A stretch of DNA of 63,885 nucleotides, the filler included, from Neoconidiobolus thromboides FSU 785 (lineage: Eukaryota; Fungi; Entomophthoromycota), in the NCBI GenBank assembly GCA_025603075.1. It is 9 parts of 9 records of this genome, joined end to end, with 100 filler letters (N's around TTAATTAATTAA, not from the genome) between each part and the next. Parts side by side here need not be neighbours in the genome. Positions count along the whole stretch, not along the records: positions 15,433 to 23,814 come from MU626689.1; 8 more parts are not named here. One strand, written 5' to 3'. The first letter of the stretch is position 1. Every line of letters starts with the position of its first letter. Both the position numbers and the translations under genes were made by a program. Below are positions 1,299 through 23,914 of this stretch, piece after piece. The notes under the pieces were generated by a model that saw nothing but the letters and a program-made list of their open reading frames with translations, was not told the DNA's origin and made no database searches.

Positions 1299-2400
1299 GA
1301 TTGTTTATTTTTTTATCTTATTAATTTTTTATATACTATAAATTAGAATTATCAAATAAATATTAAAAGAAAAAGACATCCCTACATACAGCTATTGCAG
1401 TTCTTTTGAGACTTAATTAAGCACTTATTTAGGAGAAATTTCTTTGTTAAAATTTGGCTAAGATATCTGAACCAGGGTTTAAAAAAGTTGTAGAGGAGTT
1501 ACAACAGCTGTAGAATGTTTTTTATTTGTTTGGTTAGGTTTAAAGTTAAAGAAATATTGCCCTCAATGTGTACATATTCTAAAGTTATCCTGGGCTTAAG
1601 ATAACTCCACAGCTTCAACCAACTAGAACCCAGTAGATAGAAAAATAAAATGGATTTAATAACCAAGCAAGTTTATTAAAATGAAAAACATAAGCTCAAA
1701 GTTCCTTATAATAAGTAAAATAAAGGCACGTGCTGTCATAAAATAAATTGATTTAATAAAAGAATTTTATTTTATTATTTAATAGTATTATGGTGAAATA
1801 TAAAAATGAAAATAATTTATTATCAGAATTAGCCTTAATTGAAATAGTGATAACATGATTTGTTAAAAAATAATGAAATTGTAAAACTTTAAATAGGTAA
1901 TAATTTTTTAAAACCTAATGTATGAATATAATTGATTACATAATATAAATGTTGAAAAATAAATCAAGATTCATGTACAACAATTTGTATAATAATATAG
2001 TAATAATAATAATGATTCTTCTATTACTACTATTATTAAGACCAGAGACCAGCTATGGTTTAATTGAGGTATAACCTTTTTTGATTTAGCCCGCTTTAGG
2101 GAGTGTTGTATTCAATAAACATTCAGGTATTTTAAAAATAACGAAACATAATAAAATCAAGATAATAGCTTTACTGTAGTATTAAAATAAACCAAGAAAC
2201 TAGTAATACTTTATGATTTATGATACAAATATGGGTGCCATAAGAAAATTCTATGAATTTTAAATGAATTAAAGAAAATTTTATACCTATTAGGAACATA
2301 ATACAATAGATTAAGCGGTAGATTCAATAGAATGAAAAAATAGTATAAAAACTTGGAATAGTGTCTTTTCAAAATAAATAATAATAATACAATAGATAAA

Positions 2401-3210
2401 ATGAAACTTAACATTATTTTAAATTTACTCACTTTAACTTTAATTTATGGTTCCCAAGAATGGAGTTATAAAGGCGAAAATGGTCCAGAAAGATGGGGCT
2501 TATTAAAAAAAGAGTATAGTGCATGTAGTGAAGGAAAAAGACAATCCCCAATTGCACTAAACCAAGGGTCCTATTTCACGAAGACAGAAAACTATGTAAA
2601 TCCATGGAAAGACAGTGATAAGTCATTCGGCTACGCTAATAACGGCCATTCATTGACTGTAGACTTAAAGGATTTAAAAGTACCATTTAAATTAGATTGC
2701 AAAAATTTAGAATTAAAACAGTTTCATGTCCATACACCTGCTGAACATACGGTAGATGGTAAAACATATGATTTGGAGGCCCATTTCGTTTTTACTAATA
2801 GTAAAAGTAATTTATTCCAAGTTTTTGGCGTTTTTTTCCAGCAAGATGATAAACTAACTGATAACAGCGGATTCTTTAATAGCGTATTAAATAAATCTAA
2901 TTCTACTATCAATATTAAAGATAGTAAAATTGATTTTAAAGGGTTGAACTTAGGTCAACTATATAACCAAGTTGATGGATTTAAATCAGGCTATGTTTAT
3001 CGTGGATCTTTAACTACCCCGCCATGTACTGAAGCAGTCCGATTTATTATTTCTGATAAGATATTACCAATTTCTAAAGCTCAATTAGATGTTTTTAAAT
3101 TGTCAGTTCATGACAATAACGCAAGACCAATTCAAAAACTTACTGAATTCCATCAGCCTTCTATCTTAGACTTTAAGAAATGTGAGAAATGCATAACTAA
3201 ACAAAGTTAG
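2401..3210 (+). CDS. Secreted alpha-class carbonic anhydrase (269 aa, intronless)
   Basis: Hydrophobic N-terminus; WSY..ENGP..W; NNGHS proton-shuttle His; zinc ligands QFHVH and LEAHFV; YRGSLTTPPCTE. Confidence 0.95.
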   Translation: MKLNIILNLLTLTLIYGSQEWSYKGENGPERWGLLKKEYSACSEGKRQSPIALNQGSYFTKTENYVNPWKDSDKSFGYANNGHSLTVDLKDLKVPFKLDCKNLELKQFHVHTPAEHTVDGKTYDLEAHFVFTNSKSNLFQVFGVFFQQDDKLTDNSGFFNSVLNKSNSTINIKDSKIDFKGLNLGQLYNQVDGFKSGYVYRGSLTTPPCTEAVRFIISDKILPISKAQLDVFKLSVHDNNARPIQKLTEFHQPSILDFKKCEKCITKQS

Positions 3211-4620
3211 TTAAAATTACTTTAAGCATTTATTAAATAAATAATCCATATTTCTATCTATAATAATTTCATACTTTCTCAATTTCTATCGAGCAATTTC
3301 AATATATCACTTTAATGAAAAAGCATTTGACTAAACTTTAGTACTCTTTGTACATAGACGCTTAATAATTCTTGTTAACTATAGTAACTTGTTCTATTTA
3401 GGACAAGCTTAGAAGGCATATATATAATATTTTAAGTAAGAGGATGATGTTCACAACAGCTTATATTTACTCTTGAATCATTCAATAATTCAATAGTTGA
3501 ATATTTACAAATTGCTTTTGTATGAGTTAAAATTCTAAAACTAAAGGAGAATAGTCTTTGGAAAAATCACATTTGCCACTCAATCTCTAGCTTTAGTAGT
3601 TTGAGCATGGTCTTCCCTGATTTTTTTTGAGGTTTTTTTAGCTCTCTTACCTTCCATTAAATTTTTATCTTGGTCGCCAGTCTTGGGACCATGGACTCTT
3701 TCTATCCCAAACTTTCAGCAGAGAAGCTACAGTTTCCATCTTACCCGATTTCCCTTTGTCTCACATTTGACTAAACTCTTGCAAAAAGAATATAAGTTTT
3801 CTAAATATGATTTTACCTATTCTAAATCCTATGCTTTTGAATTTAAGATTACTTCTAATTGTTTAGTAACTTACTTCTCTACTTTGCCTCTTCTTACTTC
3901 TTTAAATGCTCCCCCTCATACACGTTTCTTTTTCTTCTAGAAATAAAAGCACTTGAGGTTTAATTGCTTTACAAGATTTGAAAAAACGCATCAAAAAGTT
4001 GTAGTTGATACTAAATCTATCGATGCTCACATAATTATAAACTGAAAGCATGAAATTACAACATTTGTTAAAATTCGAATGAGTTGACTACAATTGTTTT
4101 TTTGGTTGATGATTTTCTAATTATTTAAAATGTACTGAGATAAAGGCTCAATCGTCATCAGGCTAATTAAAAATACTGGATCTAAGCCAAGTTATCAAAA
4201 TATATACAGTCAGTGAATAGCTTGGCTTTTAAGGATAAGATCCATAGTATAATAGGCTTAAAATTGCAACAAAAGAATACTAAATATATATAATCCATAG
4301 TTAATAGTAGCTATAAATACAAGATAAACATAATATTTATAACAGTTTTATACTATTTACCTGAAATCTCACACTACCAAAAAACCATAGGCATAAATTA
4401 CATTGACGAGTTGGATTCATCAAATGTTTCTGTAATTACAAAACTCCTTTTTGTTTGGAACAATTTTTTAAAAAAATCTGGATTCAGGTGATTAAAAAAA
4501 ATACAACCAATTAGAACTCAATAAGCTAAGATATCTCGGCATAGAATCAACTAAATTGAGATTAATTTTTTGGCTTGTTTAGTTTTTACAACCAGTTAGT
4601 TTAAATTTATTTAAGCAAAG

Positions 4621-15432: not shown

Positions 15433-15861
15433 AATTTTCAAAAATTCCATTTCGAAGTTTAGTTATGAAAGTTTGCATTTTATTTTTATTTCAACAAAAA
15501 ATAAAGTCAAATAACTGTATTTGTATAATTATATAATCATATAGTTATATATTATGTATCTGTTAAACATCTAACAGAACTAACATAAAACATATAATTA
15601 GGAAAATTAGTTATTTAAGAAAAGGAAACAATTAAAATAAGTTTTAAATAGAGACATTTAATTTAAGCTTTTTAGATTTAACCGTCATATTAGACACGAA
15701 TTTAAAATTTTAAAATTTGGATTAATTTCTAAATTCTGAAACCAATTAGGACAGCCCCATATCTTATTTATTTATATTGAATAAGTTAAAATTTTATTGA
15801 TTTATTATTTATTTGAGAATAATAATTAAAGTATTATATCGGATCCTAACTTCAGAAGTAG

Positions 15862-15993
15862 AAAATAATTTTAAAAGTTAGAAAGATATAAATCTAATGC
15901 TATTAGGCTGTGCCATCCACGCTGACAATGGTTCATATAATTTGATGGCTCTATGAATTAGATTTACATCTCTCTAACTTTCAGAATTATTTT
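15862..15993. repeat. Long inverted repeat (hairpin)
   Basis: 37-bp arms 15862-15898 and 15957-15993 with 4 transition mismatches; inner GCCATC/GATGGC pair. Confidence 0.85.
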
Positions 15994-16096
15994 ATATATT
16001 CAGTTCGCAATATAAGCTATAGGAAGCTCAAACATAAAAAGATATTAATTCAAAAATTATTTAATAATTGAGTAAATGCTAATAAAACTAGACAAA

Positions 16097-16196
16097 ATAG
16101 GGTATTTTCAGTACGTATTTAAATACTAGAAAATATTTTCACTCAAACAATGCTTAAAATGAAAAAAGTGATGAAATCAAAAAAACATCTCTACAT
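16097..16196 (+). mobile_element. Family A MITE (degenerate)
   Basis: Right two-thirds match the consensus. Confidence 0.65.
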
Positions 16197-16756
16197 GTTG
16201 AAGATAAAAGCCTAGAATTTAAACATATGTCACTACTATTATTTCATTACCAAATGTCATTTAAAGTGTGTTAACAAATTTTATAATATAAATAGGCGAT
16301 TTTATGTTTATAGATTCCTAAATAAACAATTGTTTTGGAACTTACACACTTGAATTATATTTAGAAAGACTATAAACTATTGAGTTATTTAGCTATCCAA
16401 TTCCCTTAACCCTTTAAGTATTAAACATCTCAAAAAATTATGTTTGATTGGACCATACTTTCTAATCGATTTAATCCCAACTGGATCAGTATTCTTTGAA
16501 GCTCTCAATACCTAAAGAGTTAATTCATTTAAACCGTGCAAGCAATGCTTGTGATAATACAATTTTGATTAACAGAAATTTGACACAATTTTCATCTATA
16601 GTACTTGTAGTTAAATAATTTTTGTTACTATCTTTGTAATGATAATAATAATTTTAATTCGATAACTTATTTTAACTACAAAGTAAAAAAATAAAGGCAC
16701 TTAAATGCAATCAGTTTTAATTAGATTTTAAAATAAGTTTTTCCATAAGGGTAATA

Positions 16757-16858
16757 ATTTGGGGATGTATCGTGTTCAGGAATTTTACTACCAATCTTTC
16801 CACTCAAATACCGCTTAAAAAATGAAAAAAGTGATGAACCCAAGAAAATATCCCATTT
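16757..16858 (+). mobile_element. Family A MITE
   Basis: Full length; TSD ATTT/ATTT. Confidence 0.9.
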
Positions 16859-17185
16859 ATTCTTTTAGTTTTAATAAACATTCCTTCAGGTATATAATTT
16901 TAAAAAAAAATCTTTGGAAAATTCAATTTTTGTGTTTTTAAATTTAGTAGCCATGGTTTTAAAATACCAAGTTGTAAAATATAAAAGTATTATGTTATAT
17001 CGTATAAACAATATAACATATTTTTATTTACAACTTTTTGTTTTATTGTTCGATTTCCAAAAATGATTCCAGAAGGTTATACATTTTGTATATTGAATTT
17101 TTAGCTAAAGACAATAAACTATTTACAACGATAAAGCCAATAAAGTTCTACCAATTGTTTTTAAAAAATTAAAGTTATTTATTAA

Positions 17186-17818
17186 TTAGCAGTAAGGGGG
17201 TAAGGGTATTAATCCATTTAAAGGTGCCAAATGCATAGCTAATGACACTGGGAAGTTTTCTTTATAACCACAATTTGGATCTTCATCATACTCCTGGCTA
17301 CATTCAATTAGTTCGGTTCTACCAAATCCAATATATCTTTCATGAATTTCTGGTGCAGCATGGACAAAGCCGCCAGACCTTGGTCCAAGTTGAGGAACAA
17401 CATCATTCCTATTAGAGTATCTAGTTATTGGTACATTCAAATCTGCAATATATTGGGCAAATCCTTCATTTCCTGGACGAGGAGAAGCGTAAGCATAGGC
17501 TTCTATCTTTCTATGATCATACCTTGATTTAAGAAGAGAAACCCAATCTGGAAGAGAGATCGTTGCAGTTGAAGCTCCTAGACTATATCCAGTTATATGT
17601 AGCGTAAAATTTTTGTATATAGGATTATCAAGTAATTCAATAACAGCATTACGTACAGGGAAATAGCTGGAAAGGTAATTGGAATAAAACCCATGATGTA
17701 CTTTCACACCCTCTTTTGCAGTAGGTAAATCAACCATAGGATATTCGAAATTAGTAACCCAATTTTGAGCAGTTAATGAAGCACGATAAGAAACAAGAGT
17801 TAGTTTGTTTGGTTTCAA
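17186..17818 (-). CDS. Class 3 (fungal) lipase catalytic domain; 5' end not resolved
   Basis: VSYRAS lid entry; VHHGFY; ITGYSLG nucleophile; YASPRPGN; NRNDVVP Asp; MHL His. The frame has no in-frame ATG and is closed by TGA at about 17858-17860. Confidence 0.85.
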   Translation of the reverse strand: MKPNKLTLVSYRASLTAQNWVTNFEYPMVDLPTAKEGVKVHHGFYSNYLSSYFPVRNAVIELLDNPIYKNFTLHITGYSLGASTATISLPDWVSLLKSRYDHRKIEAYAYASPRPGNEGFAQYIADLNVPITRYSNRNDVVPQLGPRSGGFVHAAPEIHERYIGFGRTELIECSQEYDEDPNCGYKENFPVSLAMHLAPLNGLIPLPPYC

Positions 17819-18970
17819 AAGAAACCCCGGGTTTAATACTAAGGATATATAAGGTATTCATATTTTAAGTCCTCATGGGAATGTTTTTCAAATAATAGAG
17901 GTATAGCTTAAGTTTATTGCACAAGAGGTGAAGAAAAGGGGTCCATAAAAGTTTATGAGTATTTTTATAGTAGCATTGTTAAAGCTCTAAGATAAAAGAA
18001 ATATAACATTCGATAAAGTATCACTTAATAAGATAAAAAATAGAAGAAGAGATTGAATGGTAGGTTATTTAGCTTAAAATTAGACGATAGCATATCAATA
18101 GGCAAATGTACTCCTATATTAAAGTCATCTTTATTACTTTAGCATCAAAAATGTGCAAAATTCCCTTATGGATATTAATAATTTCTATATTGTGATAAAT
18201 ATTTTATGCCTTAACTATTTATATAGTATCCTTATTGTTTATATAATAAGATCTAAGGTTATCAAATCATATTATAATATTGCCACTTTCAATGGTTTTA
18301 TGTAAATTACCAATGGTATTGAATAAAATGAAGTCAATCAAAATATATGAGTTTATTATAAAATGAGATAGAATTATATGGACATTAGTTTCTAAAGTTA
18401 GCTCACCACCCTCTGCTACATCTATGCGTCTAATTAAATAACAGCAACCAATTATTATTCAATAATAAAAATATATGGTAAGTAGTTTTGAAGGAGCCAG
18501 AAGAATTAGTTGTTCAACACTATAATATATAGCGCATATTGAGCTACTTATTTATTCACTAATGCTATTAGCAAGTTAAACATTGTATATGCTTATGTTT
18601 TTCCCGGTAGCCTCTAAAATTAACGAGCGAAATTGAAATAGAAGTTTTTAGCTATATTATGGTTTTCTTTTCTATACCATAAGGTTTTTTTAATTGATTG
18701 TTATTATTTGTAGATAGTATTTTTCCAAAAATCAACCAAACAAAGGAATAGTAGATTACTACTTAATTTTTATAAAATATATTTTGTAAAACAAATAAAG
18801 CATTTTTAATCGTATTAATAATTCATAAGGCCTTTCATAGTATCATTCAAATTAAAATATAAAAAGTTGAGCTTTACTTTTTTAATTATATAAAAAATGG
18901 AAGTATGAGATTGCTGAAGCTATAATTAATACCACTGACTACTTTTAAAGCACAGAAATAACACCATGAT

Positions 18971-19008
18971 ACTATAATACTATAATACTATAATACTATA
19001 ATACTATT
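18971..19008. repeat. Tandem 8-mer (TACTATAA)~5
   Basis: Direct reading. Confidence 0.85.
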
Positions 19009-19075
19009 TCAAATAATACTGGTTAGTTACTTCACAAAGTTTAATAAAGAATTAGCGCATATAGCTTTGTTTTAT

Positions 19076-20509
19076 TTATTTTAGAATATTTCTGATAAAG
19101 TCAAGAATCTTCTCTTTTGCTTCTGCAACATATTTTGTATCAGTTGGATATGGATAAGTCAAATCAGCGCAATGCGCAGCCCCTTTAATAACTATGGAGG
19201 ATAACTTGACTGTTGAATTAGTGATAGAAAGCGGAGTCCATGGATCAAGTTCGCCATTAACAAATAATAAGTTATCAATTTCGATATTTTTTCCAAGATA
19301 TTTGTTATTAGTTTCATCAATATCTGGATGTTCAGGTCCTCCAGGTCCAAAAATATCATTGCAAAGTGATTTTTCGTTAAAAGCAACATCTAAAAGGCGG
19401 GATTTCATAGTTGGAAAGTTTTTTGGTGGGGCCACTTGCCAGTAACCAAACTCATTGCAAGATTGATAAAGCCATTGACGATTATACTCAGTAGGAGCTG
19501 GTTGCTCAGTAGAACTAAAATAGGAATAATCGCTAAAGTCTTTACATGTACTATTTCCAAGGTATTTTTTGAAATTTGTTGCAAAATCATTTAATCTTTC
19601 AGCTTTTGTTCCATTTAAATACAATGATTCACAATGCTTTGCAATTTTTAAGTTAGTGTTATCATTATCTTGAACAATACCAACAATATAACCTAAACTA
19701 TTAGCAAAGTATTTATCATCAACATCACCACAATTAAACATAGCTTTTAAAGCTTCAGATTTAACTTTATCACCACTAAATAGTACATCATCAATTGCTT
19801 TGATGTTTTCTAGATAATAATCTAAACATCCTTGTCCACCGTTTATAGCGAATGACTTTTGAGCTTGTAAGTCATACTCATAAAAATCTTCTTTTGCTTC
19901 AACTGGTGCAGAAGATGCAACTGCCCCATAAAACACATCTGGGTACTTCAAACGCGCCCAAGCAGCAAGGTTTCCAGGATAGCTTCCTCCGCCAATGATC
20001 CATTTTGTAGGAGATCTATCAGTCTTATTGGAATTAGATTGAGGCAATTCAATGTTTAAAGCAAATCGAGCTAAGTCACCAAGAGCTAAATCTGAAGTAA
20101 GATATTTTAAGCTATCAAGGGTCAAATCAGGCTTAGGGTACGATTTGCCATAAAATCGATGCTCTAAAGCATACACAATACCATTATGCTCTTCAGCTGA
20201 TTTAGCTAAAAGCGAATATTGAGCCCAGCTCTCGGTCAATTCACTTTCACCACCAACAAAAAGAAAAGCAGGCCCGCCTGGTTTATAGTATTGATCATTT
20301 ACAAAGTATCTTTGCTTCCAAAATTGGTTACTATCTGGGTCACCATGATGAGTTAATGTTTGATTAAACCAATATTCAGTTGAGCCAGCATCACTTCTCG
20401 AGATTCGGAATTTGTTTAATACATTGTCATCAAGTTTTAAGGAGCCATAATATGGCTCAGCCATTGTGGAAATAAGTAGTGTAGAAATTTGAAATAATCT
20501 AATATTCAT
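19076..20509 (-). CDS. Secreted serine peptidase family S28 (477 aa, intronless)
   Basis: Signal peptide; FNQTLTH, QRYFVN, LEHRFYGKS, GGSYPG (Ser), NGELDPW (Asp), GAAHCADL (His). Confidence 0.96.
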   Translation of the reverse strand: MNIRLFQISTLLISTMAEPYYGSLKLDDNVLNKFRISRSDAGSTEYWFNQTLTHHGDPDSNQFWKQRYFVNDQYYKPGGPAFLFVGGESELTESWAQYSLLAKSAEEHNGIVYALEHRFYGKSYPKPDLTLDSLKYLTSDLALGDLARFALNIELPQSNSNKTDRSPTKWIIGGGSYPGNLAAWARLKYPDVFYGAVASSAPVEAKEDFYEYDLQAQKSFAINGGQGCLDYYLENIKAIDDVLFSGDKVKSEALKAMFNCGDVDDKYFANSLGYIVGIVQDNDNTNLKIAKHCESLYLNGTKAERLNDFATNFKKYLGNSTCKDFSDYSYFSSTEQPAPTEYNRQWLYQSCNEFGYWQVAPPKNFPTMKSRLLDVAFNEKSLCNDIFGPGGPEHPDIDETNNKYLGKNIEIDNLLFVNGELDPWTPLSITNSTVKLSSIVIKGAAHCADLTYPYPTDTKYVAEAKEKILDFIRNILK

Positions 20510-20857
20510 TTTTTTAGTTTGATCTTTAAATTTTCATCCACTTTAAATATTTTTTTATTTAAAAGTAGTTACTTAAAAGTATATTGTTAATTACATCAAA
20601 AAAATTTGAATATTCTATATAGATCAATTTATTTTGTTTATTAGAATAAAGGTTCTTTTAAATTTATCAATCTTAATATTTTTTTACTCAATATTACGCT
20701 GTATACTATATTTAGAAATTTTATTTTTAGAAAATAAGGCAGAATCAATATTGACTTATTTTTACAATAACATAGTTTAGTTATAAATTTATTATTAGCT
20801 TAATATATTATAATATGTAAGTTTTAAAGCACTGCCATTAAAAAAAGTTCAATTTAA

Positions 20858-20957
20858 CATTGGGAATATTTTTTTGCTTCATTACTTTTTCCATCCTTTA
20901 AGCACTATGTAAGCGGGAAAATTGTAAATTTCTTAAACACGAAAATACACTCCCATT
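20858..20957 (-). mobile_element. Family A MITE
   Basis: Reverse orientation, near full length. Confidence 0.85.
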
Positions 20958-21637
20958 TGTAAATCTGTTTTTTTATTATAAGTTTTTTAAACTTGAGTTC
21001 AATTGAAAATGAATAGAATATCTAGATGAGAAAAAGTGCTTACATTTGTTCAACTAATAATTGTAAAAGTCCAAAGAGTTCATAATTGAATCTAAATAAT
21101 TATGTTATATTTGAATTTACGTGTCTCACCTTGCTTTTCATCACATTGATAGATATTAAAATTACGTATAAACTTGACTAAATAACCTACAACGTCCCTT
21201 TAGTCAAATTAATATTCTTTTATTTCCACGAAACTTAGATTCTAATTGCTATAACCAAAATCTCACTATGACTCACTGCTCAACTCATTAGTCTTCTTTT
21301 TTAAAGGATTTTAATTCCCATATTATGAGCATTTTAAATGTTTTGCAAAAATTGGATTCTAATTAATTTGATAAAAAATAGAAGTCAAAGGTATTGAAAT
21401 CTGAAAATATATTCAAAATAATTTTACAATGAGCTATGTTATTATGGCCATCATACTTTAAAACCTAATAGCGATATGCGATTATAAACTCAATTATGTT
21501 TATTATTATAAAATGCCTAAATTTTATAATTACTTCACAGAACTTGCAAAGTTTTTTCTTTATTTTTTTAAAAGATATAGCAATAATTCAATATTTTTAC
21601 GTTCAATATAATTTTGGGTTATTTTAGCTTGTTCTCG

Positions 21638-22330
21638 ATATGGAGTTGTCTGAATTAGTTTCATTATTTTATCCAATTTTTAAAAAAAATTGTATTTTAA
21701 AAACTTCGCTTAAAATTCTATAAAATCAAATTTTTTATTAAAACAAAAGTACCCAGACACAGCTCTAAATCATTCTATTATAGTTTATAATGTAAGCTAG
21801 TTGAATTTCTACTAGATCTTAAATACATGTTCTTATAAAGCTTAATTGAGAAATATTTATTATCAACTGCTTTATAACCAACATTGTAGATTTATTATCA
21901 AATAAATAAACTATTTTAATCTTATAATTACATTATCAATATATTTCCAAGTTAATAAATAGCTGCATGGGAGGGAGTGGTTAGCCCCAAAACTATACTT
22001 AACTATCCCTATATAGTACAAGTAATAATAGTTTTTACATATTATTACATTTACTTGTTCTTTGACTATTTATTAACTTAACTATTAATAACTTAAGTAA
22101 TCTTAACATTTAAAGATCTATTTCTATCATTTAACAAACTACTTACTTGCTTATTAAATATCGAAATTTTTAAATTCCCTGTTATCTTTGTGAGGTAAGT
22201 TGGGATTGATCTTTTAATTTTTGTATTTTCTATAGACTCTATAACTTTAATTGGAACTATATCGCTTTTTTTTTATGTATCAGATACTGGATAGCAGTGT
22301 AGTTTATTGTTATGTTTAATAAAGTGTAAA
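21638..22330 (+). mobile_element. Family C copy 1: downstream terminus of the Sola2-like element
   Basis: ATAT|GGAGTTGTCTGAATTAG...; lies 3' of the transposase frame; similar by eye to 28644, 39476 and 55317. Confidence 0.75.
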
Positions 22331-22484
22331 TACTTCTCAATACCTTGCATCTCTATTATTCTTTTTGTGTTTTTGTTTCTTTTATACTTTTTAAAAGTTA
22401 TATCTGTTTCCCCATTATTAATAGTCGAGTTATTAATTTTATTATGCTCGCAAATAAAAGCCTCAAATCTTGAAATTAATTGAT

Positions 22485-22939
22485 NNNNNNNNNNNNNNNN
22501 NNNNNNNNNNNNNNNNNNNNNNNNNNNNNNNNNNNNNNNNNNNNNNNNNNNNNNNNNNNNNNNNNNNNNNNNNNNNNNNNNNNNNNNNNNNNNNNNNNNN
22601 NNNNNNNNNNNNNNNNNNNNNNNNNNNNNNNNNNNNNNNNNNNNNNNNNNNNNNNNNNNNNNNNNNNNNNNNNNNNNNNNNNNNNNNNNNNNNNNNNNNN
22701 NNNNNNNNNNNNNNNNNNNNNNNNNNNNNNNNNNNNNNNNNNNNNNNNNNNNNNNNNNNNNNNNNNNNNNNNNNNNNNNNNNNNNNNNNNNNNNNNNNNN
22801 NNNNNNNNNNNNNNNNNNNNNNNNNNNNNNNNNNNNNNNNNNNNNNNNNNNNNNNNNNNNNNNNNNNNNNNNNNNNNNNNNNNNNNNNNNNNNNNNNNNN
22901 NNNNNNNNNNNNNNNNNNNNNNNNNNNNNNNNNNNNNNN
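22485..22939. other. Sized assembly gap (455 N)
   Basis: N run. Confidence 1.
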
Positions 22940-23735
22940 CCCCATATGCTGAATCACGATTCAATATTTCAGATAAATAATCAAAGTAAACTTTGCCTAT
23001 TGTTTTATCATCTTTTAAATACAAAATACCAAAACCTAATACTGATACAGCTTGTTTACTATAATGGTCTAAATTCATTAAATCTGGTCTTGTTCCTATT
23101 TCCATATTTTGTTTAAAATCTAAAATTATTATACAACTTTTATTATTTGATTTTTTAATAGCTTCATTAAATGTGTTTTTTTGAGTATCAACACAGAATT
23201 TATATAATTTGTATAATTTTTCTTCTTCATTGAAAATTTCTTTTATCTCTGCTTTGTTTTTTATTACTATATTTATTTTATTTCAAATAATTTTTTTCTA
23301 ACTGTATACTGGACATATATATTACATAGATCTGTTTTTCTTGCTGCATTTTTGAAATTACTTGGTATATATTTAAAGAACGTTGACCTAGCTACCACTT
23401 TATCTTTTAGATCACTCAGATATTTACTATATATCACTCTTCTACTTTTATTTAATATATATATATTATCTGATGAATATTTACTATCATTATTTTTTTT
23501 ATTAAATCTTGATGAAATAGTTGAATTATTTAGCAAATATTGTATAATAGTTTCAATTTGCTCATCTTTAATTTTTTTTGTATTTTTAATAATAAGTTGT
23601 AATGTTGATATTTTATTATTATTACTTATTTTTGAATAATCATATTGATTTCTGTTTATATTAAACTCAAAACTCTTACGTTCACCAAAAGAATATACTG
23701 AAGCTATAGTTGATAATAACGGTACTTGTTGATTT

Positions 23736-23764
23736 TTGTTTCCTGTTTCCTGTTTCCTGTTTCC
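23736..23764. repeat. Tandem 7-mer (TTTCCTG)~4 inside the transposase relic
   Basis: Direct reading; removing two units restores the transposase frame. Confidence 0.85.
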
Positions 23765-23914
23765 CTCAAAGCACTAATTTTATACATTGCTTGATTAAGT
23801 TTATTATTATCGATNNNNNNNNNNNNNNNNNNNNNNNNNNNNNNNNNNNNNNNNNNNNTTAATTAATTAANNNNNNNNNNNNNNNNNNNNNNNNNNNNNN
23901 NNNNNNNNNNNNNN

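Follow-up and report, generated by a model that had tools for sequence, protein, structure and literature searches.

The window analyzed here is a stretch of 63,885 nucleotides, filler included, joined from nine parts of the genome of the fungus Neoconidiobolus thromboides FSU 785 (GCA_025603075.1); positions 15,433 to 23,814 come from record MU626689.1 and form one piece of it. At the right end of this piece, the minus strand of 21638-23814 very probably holds a dead copy of a compact Sola2 DNA transposon, of which the 3' four fifths are present; the element belongs to a numerous, broken family and has a related miniature inverted-repeat transposable element (MITE). An earlier reading made from the sequence alone had joined three protein pieces on this strand into a transposase across a 7-mer slippage, a frameshift, and an assembly gap. 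Translation of 21400-23814 revealed that the transposase open reading frame (ORF) fragments on the minus strand of 22096-23814 are indeed one broken reading frame, with the three pieces (A, B, and C) where they had been placed. The features of this copy are listed by position.

21638-21641, no strand: 4-bp flank ATAT at the 3' end of the element, read as a target-site duplication (TSD) whose partner copy lies beyond the piece edge
21642-21663, minus strand: 3' terminal inverted repeat (TIR), reading GGAGTTGTCTGAATTAGTTTCA on the plus strand and pairing with the consensus 5' TIR GGGGTTGTCCAAATTGGTTTCA
21664-22092, minus strand: 3' untranslated or subterminal region, defined by alignment with five other copies
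22093-22095, minus strand: natural stop of the transposase frame, following ...NVKIT (translation and consensus alignment)
22096-22272, minus strand: C-terminal 59 codons of the ORF, severed by a premature stop, in the frame of piece C and matching the consensus tail
22273-22275, minus strand: premature in-frame TAA, where the consensus and copy L002 have a serine codon (translation and alignment)
22276-22482, minus strand: ORF piece C, 69 amino acids (aa), QLISRFEAF...HCYPVSDT (translation)
22485-22939, no strand: assembly gap of 455 N, ~267-272 bp in other copies and holding catalytic Asp 2 and 3 there (alignment; loose end at 22484)
22941-23273, minus strand: ORF piece B, 111 aa, holding LDFKQN (first catalytic Asp, codon 23120-23118) and LNRD
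23274-23276, minus strand: site of a 1-bp deletion (consensus position 1017) that puts pieces A and B in different frames
23276-23773, minus strand: ORF piece A, 166 aa, holding RSTFFKYIPS and TDLCNIY
23737-23764, minus strand: frameshifting microsatellite expansion, GGAAACA x4 where the family has two copies, a 14-bp insertion relative to the consensus
23765-23814, minus strand: upstream part of the ORF (...NKLNQAMYKISALRE), reaching the piece edge (translation)

The slippage that the sequence-only reading had placed at 23736-23764 is the GGAAACA expansion, and the frameshift it had noticed near 23275 is the 1-bp deletion, across which P0002, an annotated protein from another copy, reads uninterrupted. 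Together with the premature TAA, these frameshifts agree with its view of a dead copy. That TAA (22275-22273) had gone unnoticed, as had the true size of the gap and the start of the ORF upstream of the piece edge: the first ~70 codons (MQTF... in P0003, P0004, and the consensus), the 5' untranslated region (UTR), and the 5' TIR of this copy all lie outside the piece. The proposed terminus, GGAGTTGTC at 21642 next to ATAT at 21638-21641, was confirmed, and both contig depth and loose ends place an abrupt repeat boundary at 21638. The window copy is 95.4% and 93.6% identical to the family consensus on its two sides, and the translated region has a G+C content of 21-25%. Two of its motifs deviate from the family: piece B has LNRD for LNHD (H to R), and TDLCNIY is a CxxC motif without its second Cys (NIY for NIC).

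Piece B matches two "hypothetical proteins" of the same strain (P0001 and P0002) at 83-87% identity, and P0001 extends past the point where the gap of the window copy begins. We compared the window copy with five further copies, L001 to L005, taken from the contigs of P0001, P0002, and three more annotated proteins in GCA_025603075.1. The majority consensus of the six is a 2,442-bp element with an intact ORF at nucleotides 286-1992, which encodes 568 aa without interruption and carries the catalytic triad D290/D374/D416. Its TIRs are 22 bp long and imperfect (GGGGTTGTCC...), with the sequences GGGGTTGTCCAAATTGGTTTCA and GGGGTTGTCTGAATTAGTTTCA. They start with GGG or GGA, and that of the window copy starts with GGAG. 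The left TIR, which the sequence-only reading had left to be located, is present in the consensus, in other copies, and in a second copy of the piece (15737-15758), while that of the window copy itself is beyond the piece. ATAT, once in the form ATAC (5' end of L005), was found at nine of the 10 long-element ends sampled, the 5' end of L003a having none; both ends were sampled for L001 (ATAT/ATAT) and L005 (ATAC/ATAT). The six copies are 89.5-95.4% identical to the consensus. Transitions account for about three quarters to four fifths of the substitutions, the full range between copy and consensus being 66-90% (e.g., 126 of 155 in L001), which hints at deamination of methylated cytosines or at a process like repeat-induced point mutation (RIP).

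The family is numerous. In three public DNA runs, 1,785 to 3,658 contig pieces match a 2.2-kb stretch of the element at ≥85% identity. In many contigs, parts of the element that lie far from each other are joined (e.g., 22400>23136, 23160>23567, and 22311>23564), and such joints are internal-deletion derivatives typical of cut-and-paste transposons; some of them recur among runs from organisms A, B, and C. Copy L004 also contains a fragment (3251-2943) that is 77% identical to the family. Within the 5' UTR of L005, at consensus position 289, sits a 466-bp insertion (L005:2298-2763) with ATTTT on both flanks; it is related to neither the Sola2 family nor the MITE and probably represents a further small transposon, one that duplicates a target of another length.

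The assembly gap of the window copy corresponds to 269 and 272 bp in two other copies (blastn against L001 and L002) and to consensus positions 1362-1628, or 267 bp, in the six-copy alignment. As 267 is a multiple of three, pieces B and C fall in one frame, and the frame change that appears between them arises because the written 455 exceeds 267 by 188 (2 mod 3). The motifs that the sequence-only reading had predicted for this stretch, one like SD(N/G)G and one of the form HGKS..D, were found in other copies as WADTGNHF and HHGKSIVDG; in L002:317-1144, both lie in a 276-aa frame that is open across the whole gap-equivalent stretch. Run X1 covers the host segment 15736-21667 without a single difference, implying that it comes from the window's own strain. 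Fourteen of its contigs extend from 22484 into the gap, and their translation, EALGKIEDIN ahead of QLISRFEAF, equals the family consensus. We infer from this homology that the frame of the window copy continues over the gap as had been proposed.

To the distant relatives of the transposase we applied a profile, A2, built from the family pieces and four distant matches, and searched it against 1.84 billion representative proteins. At E ≤ 1e-3 the matches numbered 2,028, falling to 820 at 1e-10 and to 183 at 1e-30. The named relatives are proteins of Smittium angustum, S. culicis, and Calcarisporiella thermophila, with E values of 1e-80 to 1e-127 against the family profiles. Sixteen near-invariant residues, including the three aspartates and HGK, fall into five motifs (TD.C, DFKEN, S..L.H, W.D...HF, and HGK...D..F), and the columns of the triad are ≥90% conserved in alignments of 34 and 86 relatives. 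The S. culicis homologue sits inside inverted ends GGGAGATT... that are 6.1 kb apart and each flanked by ATAT, which supports the same anatomy in another zoopagomycete. Some distant metagenomic relatives (the P0136 cluster, 1,099-1,144 aa) have a C-terminal PF00443 domain (E 1e-24), a ubiquitin carboxyl-terminal hydrolase. Protease fusions of this kind occur in other DNA transposon superfamilies, and we know of none from Sola.

The AlphaFold model of relative P0005, which is 37% identical to the L002 piece, has a mean predicted local distance difference test (pLDDT) score of 93.4. Its elements follow the order beta-beta-beta-helix-beta-helix-beta-helix. Of the three aspartates, D97 is part of the first strand, D179 directly follows the fourth, and D220 stands where the helix after it begins. 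As modeled, the core of P0005 is an RNase H-like transposase fold. A Foldseek search of the PDB with it returned IstA of IS21, retroviral integrases, Hermes, and Mos1/SETMAR, at E values of 1e-4 to 5e-3 and template-modeling (TM) scores of ~0.3.

The assignment to Sola2 was made by comparison with the transposases of Sola2_DFa-2 (Dictyostelium fasciculatum) and Sola2_PPa-1 (Polysphondylium pallidum), which are printed in the supplement of Bao and Jurka 2013 (PMC3627910). All 16 near-invariant residues of the family are present, in the same order, in both proteins, and by-eye counting of five collinear ungapped blocks gave 53 identical residues of 114 between the consensus and published Sola2. 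The blocks are given here with their DFa-2 counterparts.

Block 1: consensus RSTFFKYIPS...TDLCNIC, DFa-2 RSTFYKFVPS...TDTCPYC
Block 2: consensus LDFKQN, DFa-2 MDFKEN
Block 3: consensus SEILNHDS, DFa-2 SDVLNHCS
Block 4: consensus WADTGNHFRS, DFa-2 WSDGAKHFKS
Block 5: consensus HHGKSIVDGHF, DFa-2 YHGKSDVDRHF

The aspartates of DFa-2 are D326, D413, and D456, with a spacing of 87/43, and those of the consensus, D290, D374, and D416, have a spacing of 84/42. The ends agree as well: dictyostelid Sola2 elements have short imperfect TIRs and 4-bp AT-rich TSDs of the form AWWT, including ATAT, AAAT, and ATTT (PMC3627910). Thus, a manual but unambiguous alignment and the structural features together support membership in Sola2, and the Sola2-like DDD transposase (one with three catalytic aspartates) that the sequence-only reading had recognized stands on this by-eye comparison of motif set and spacing. 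Its expectation of 5'-GRG termini held for this element, which begins with GGG or GGA, and DFa-2 begins with GAG; the P. pallidum elements begin with GTT, so GRG is not universal in Sola2. The 4-bp TSDs it had expected were shown, for the related MITE, by filled and empty sites.

This MITE came to light when contigs were aligned to the host segment, on which three spots are very deep (16101-16300, 16701-16900, and 20701-21100), with a summed depth of up to ~436,000 compared with 450-500 in unique DNA. The spots are copies of a MITE of ~99 bp, GGGGATGTATTTTT...AAAAAACATCCCC. There are 18 MITEs in ~47 kb of sampled sequence, three of them in the window piece, and the MITE greatly outnumbers the long element.

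16761-16854, plus strand: full MITE copy (GGGGATGTA...ATCCC) with ATTT flanks at 16757-16760 and 16855-16858 (depth peak of ~436,000)
20862-20954, minus strand: second, more diverged MITE copy (depth peak and alignment)
~16140-16192, plus strand: 3' half of a third MITE copy (depth peak and alignment)

Two MITEs nested in L005, compared with empty sites in other copies, prove 4-bp duplications of ATAT and ATTT. Perfect 4-bp repeats flank nine of the 18 MITE copies by fixed alignment columns and 12 of the 18 after register correction, and the duplicated sequences are ATAT, AAAT, ATTT, and one TAAT. The 3' 54 nt of the MITE resemble the 3' end of the element (...TGGA.AAA.TAATGAAAC...ACA.CCCC) with a score that none of 2,000 shuffles reached; for the 5' ends, 19 of 2,000 shuffles reached the observed score. 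Most likely, the MITE is a derivative of the N. thromboides Sola2 family or of a close sibling and is moved by it.

Taken together, these data suggest how the ancestral element would have worked. It was an intronless element of ~2.44 kb with 22-bp imperfect TIRs beginning GGGG or GGAG and one gene for a 568-aa transposase. The N-terminal RSTF.K..P...TD.C..C motif of this protein is presumed to bind DNA or zinc, and its predicted RNase H-like core would present three aspartates, in DFKQN on strand 1, in WADTGNHF after strand 4, and in HGKS.VD where the following helix begins. By analogy with the chemistry of other DDE/D enzymes, the transposase would bind the TIRs and excise the element. Insertion would follow at A(A/T)(A/T)T, mostly ATAT, with the 4-bp duplication for which both length and target are documented here, and the same enzyme, or that of a close sibling family, would also move the 99-bp MITE presumably derived from it.

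Several findings count against this interpretation, some of which concern the copies themselves. No intact copy is present among the six sampled, each of which has frameshifts and stops. Catalytic residues 2 and 3 of the window copy fall in the gap, and its 5' end is off the piece. In addition, the ATAT GGGG just before the gap (22940-22946) fits either a variant like that of L004 (AYGGDC) or the start of a nested MITE; because of this ambiguity, the continuity of the window copy is not proven. The gap may hide either such a MITE insertion or the GG variant of the L004 type. L005 has a nested 98-bp MITE at exactly that ATAT (L005:3816-3936). ATAT is also palindromic, and what identifies it as a TSD of the long element, and not as a piece of the TIR, is the evidence of the MITE empty sites, L005, and L001. 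We considered the arrangement in which ATAT belongs to the TIR and another TSD lies beyond it: L001 has ATT on both sides, but nothing comparable is present in L005. The MITE empty sites show that ATAT is target DNA, and this arrangement was rejected.

Other findings bear on the superfamily. The Sola2 link is a manual alignment, which carries no computed score against a curated profile (Repbase, Dfam, or Majorek E.12), and Pfam has no Sola model (PMC5751038). No Pfam match was obtained for the window pieces, the 276-aa L002 piece, P0001, or P0002. The sole Pfam signal is weak: DUF7869 (PF25273) in 13 of 86 relatives at E < 0.01, with a best value of 1.7e-7, and the best named relative, P0013, scores 20 bits, below the gathering threshold of 26. 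The signal runs from the LNH motif as far as the second catalytic Asp. DUF7869 is probably a model of a distantly related, Sola-type transposase core. Searching the ESM Atlas with piece B returned eukaryotic clusters without a name and a faint DUF7869 lead only, and a protein search with a broad alignment for dictyostelid Sola2 returned fungal and metagenomic relatives only. Among short strings of the published Sola2 proteins, just YHGKSECD occurs in the 202 retrieved proteins, in four of them. Given the missing Pfam match and computed score, it is conceivable that the ORF comes from a different DDE/D superfamily, perhaps a new one, whose likeness to Sola2 is limited to a few short motifs, and the PDB fold matches, being weak and generic, would agree with that. 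However, the five collinear blocks with nearly half of their residues identical by eye, the full set of near-invariant residues at nearly equal spacing in both published proteins, and a TSD length and AWWT target as published for Sola2 are hard to reconcile with such a view, and we regard it as very improbable. Even less credible, to the point of being almost negligible, is the idea that the sequence is no mobile element but a host gene in decay or the remnant of a domesticated transposase. The public annotation does carry gene models on several copies, but the thousands of matching contig pieces, the TIRs and target duplications, the unrelated genomic contexts of the copies, and the frameshifts and stops in each one sampled all speak for a transposon.

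The relation between element and MITE is the part of the interpretation with the strongest competitor, namely that the 99-bp MITEs belong to a sibling Sola2 family whose TIR would be exactly GGGGATGTATTTT and that the window family is neither their parent nor their mobilizer. The TIRs of the MITE (GGGGATGTATTTTT) and the element (GGGGTTGTCCAAAT) differ at position 5 and at positions 9-13, six differences within the first 14 nt, and it is because of these that we keep the sibling family as an unlikely but still sizable alternative. It gains from the only moderately significant similarity of the 5' ends and from the 77%-identical L004 fragment, which suggests diverged subfamilies. On the other hand, the 3' ends agree at about three of every four positions over their final ~42 nt, a likeness that none of the 2,000 shuffles reached, the MITE and the element share TSD length and target, and no other autonomous candidate was seen in the ~47 kb of sampled genome. 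The proposal of the sequence-only reading that this element mobilizes the MITE family, supported by related ends and the same TSD and qualified by the differing TIRs, is therefore likely and not proven.

Beyond the window copy, the piece carries at its left edge part of another member of this Sola2 family.

15433-15758, minus strand: 5' end of a second copy, running off the left piece edge, with its TIR at 15737-15758 (blastn 85% over 333 bp)
15759-15762, no strand: ATAT flank of the second copy (sequence)

Scanning the piece for more long-element termini revealed these two partial copies only. The repeat thus occupies both contig edges, which probably explains why the assembly breaks there. 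Between the two copies lie host genes on the minus strand: a class 3 lipase fragment at 17186-17818 (PF01764, E 1e-23) and an S28 serine carboxypeptidase at 19076-20509 (PF05577, E 1e-91). A Lipase_3 gene also adjoins the L005 copy of the element. The window itself therefore shows an ordinary dead transposon copy next to host hydrolase genes.

As to novelty, a fungal survey reported Sola2 once, in Aspergillus flavus, and no Sola in Zoopagomycota (PMC5751038). We found no report of Sola with Entomophthorales or Zoopagomycota in the searchable literature, Repbase being outside the scope of the check; within that scope, the undescribed fungal Sola lineage suspected in the sequence-only reading has no match. 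What we describe is a new family of the known superfamily Sola2, compact and with a MITE partner, in N. thromboides. Sola2 has seldom been reported from fungi. The new family, very abundant in its entomophthoralean host and defined in its TIRs and target, comes with an intact consensus transposase of 568 aa, a MITE to match, and relatives in Smittium as well as Calcarisporiella, and it widens the known host range. It also supplies a missing entry for repeat libraries, as copies are now annotated as "hypothetical proteins," and offers an unusually small Sola2 element for experiments. A wider possibility, about which we are more doubtful than hopeful, is that a distinct compact Sola2 lineage (~2.4 kb, intronless, with a ~570-aa transposase and a near-strict ATAT target) is resident in early-diverging fungi (Entomophthoromycotina, Harpellales, and Calcarisporiella) and is not a sporadic, horizontally acquired guest. 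In that case the MITE burst in N. thromboides would make up a noticeable share of the genome, and the consensus could be the first Sola amenable to functional reconstruction.

Sola is, to our knowledge, among the least studied cut-and-paste superfamilies, and we know of no solved structure or demonstrated transposition assay. The superfamily was reportedly defined by Bao and coworkers in 2009; Sola1 and Sola3 are said there to have DDD transposases and 4-bp TSDs as well, with extremely low identity to Sola2 and with termini and targets that differ from those of Sola2. Comparing the N. thromboides element with the dictyostelid Sola2 elements, the likeness lies in the collinear motifs RSTF.K.VP, TD.C..C, DFKEN/DFKQN, LNH, W.D...HF, and HGKS..D.HF, the near-equal DDD spacing, the 4-bp AT-rich TSDs, and the short imperfect TIRs, and DFa-2 also begins with GAG. 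Roughly a third to a half of the residues are identical to those of the dictyostelid proteins, and this within the conserved blocks only. However, the N. thromboides element is 2.44 kb long and intronless and encodes 568 aa, whereas dictyostelid Sola2 elements are 10-15 kb long with an 888-aa transposase. Unlike them, it has no Fanzor passenger gene, resides in a zoopagomycete host, and has a very abundant 99-bp MITE partner. The Smittium and Calcarisporiella proteins, which bear no transposase annotation, are its best named relatives at ~30-40% identity, and the S. culicis element shares the ATAT-flanked inverted ends, although it is ~6.1 kb long. With IstA, retroviral integrase, Hermes, and Mos1/SETMAR, the transposase has in common the catalytic-core fold, as modeled, and the placement of the acidic residues. 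It shows no sequence similarity to these solved transposases and integrases, has an Asp as its third residue, 42 residues after the second, and contains no large insertion domain.

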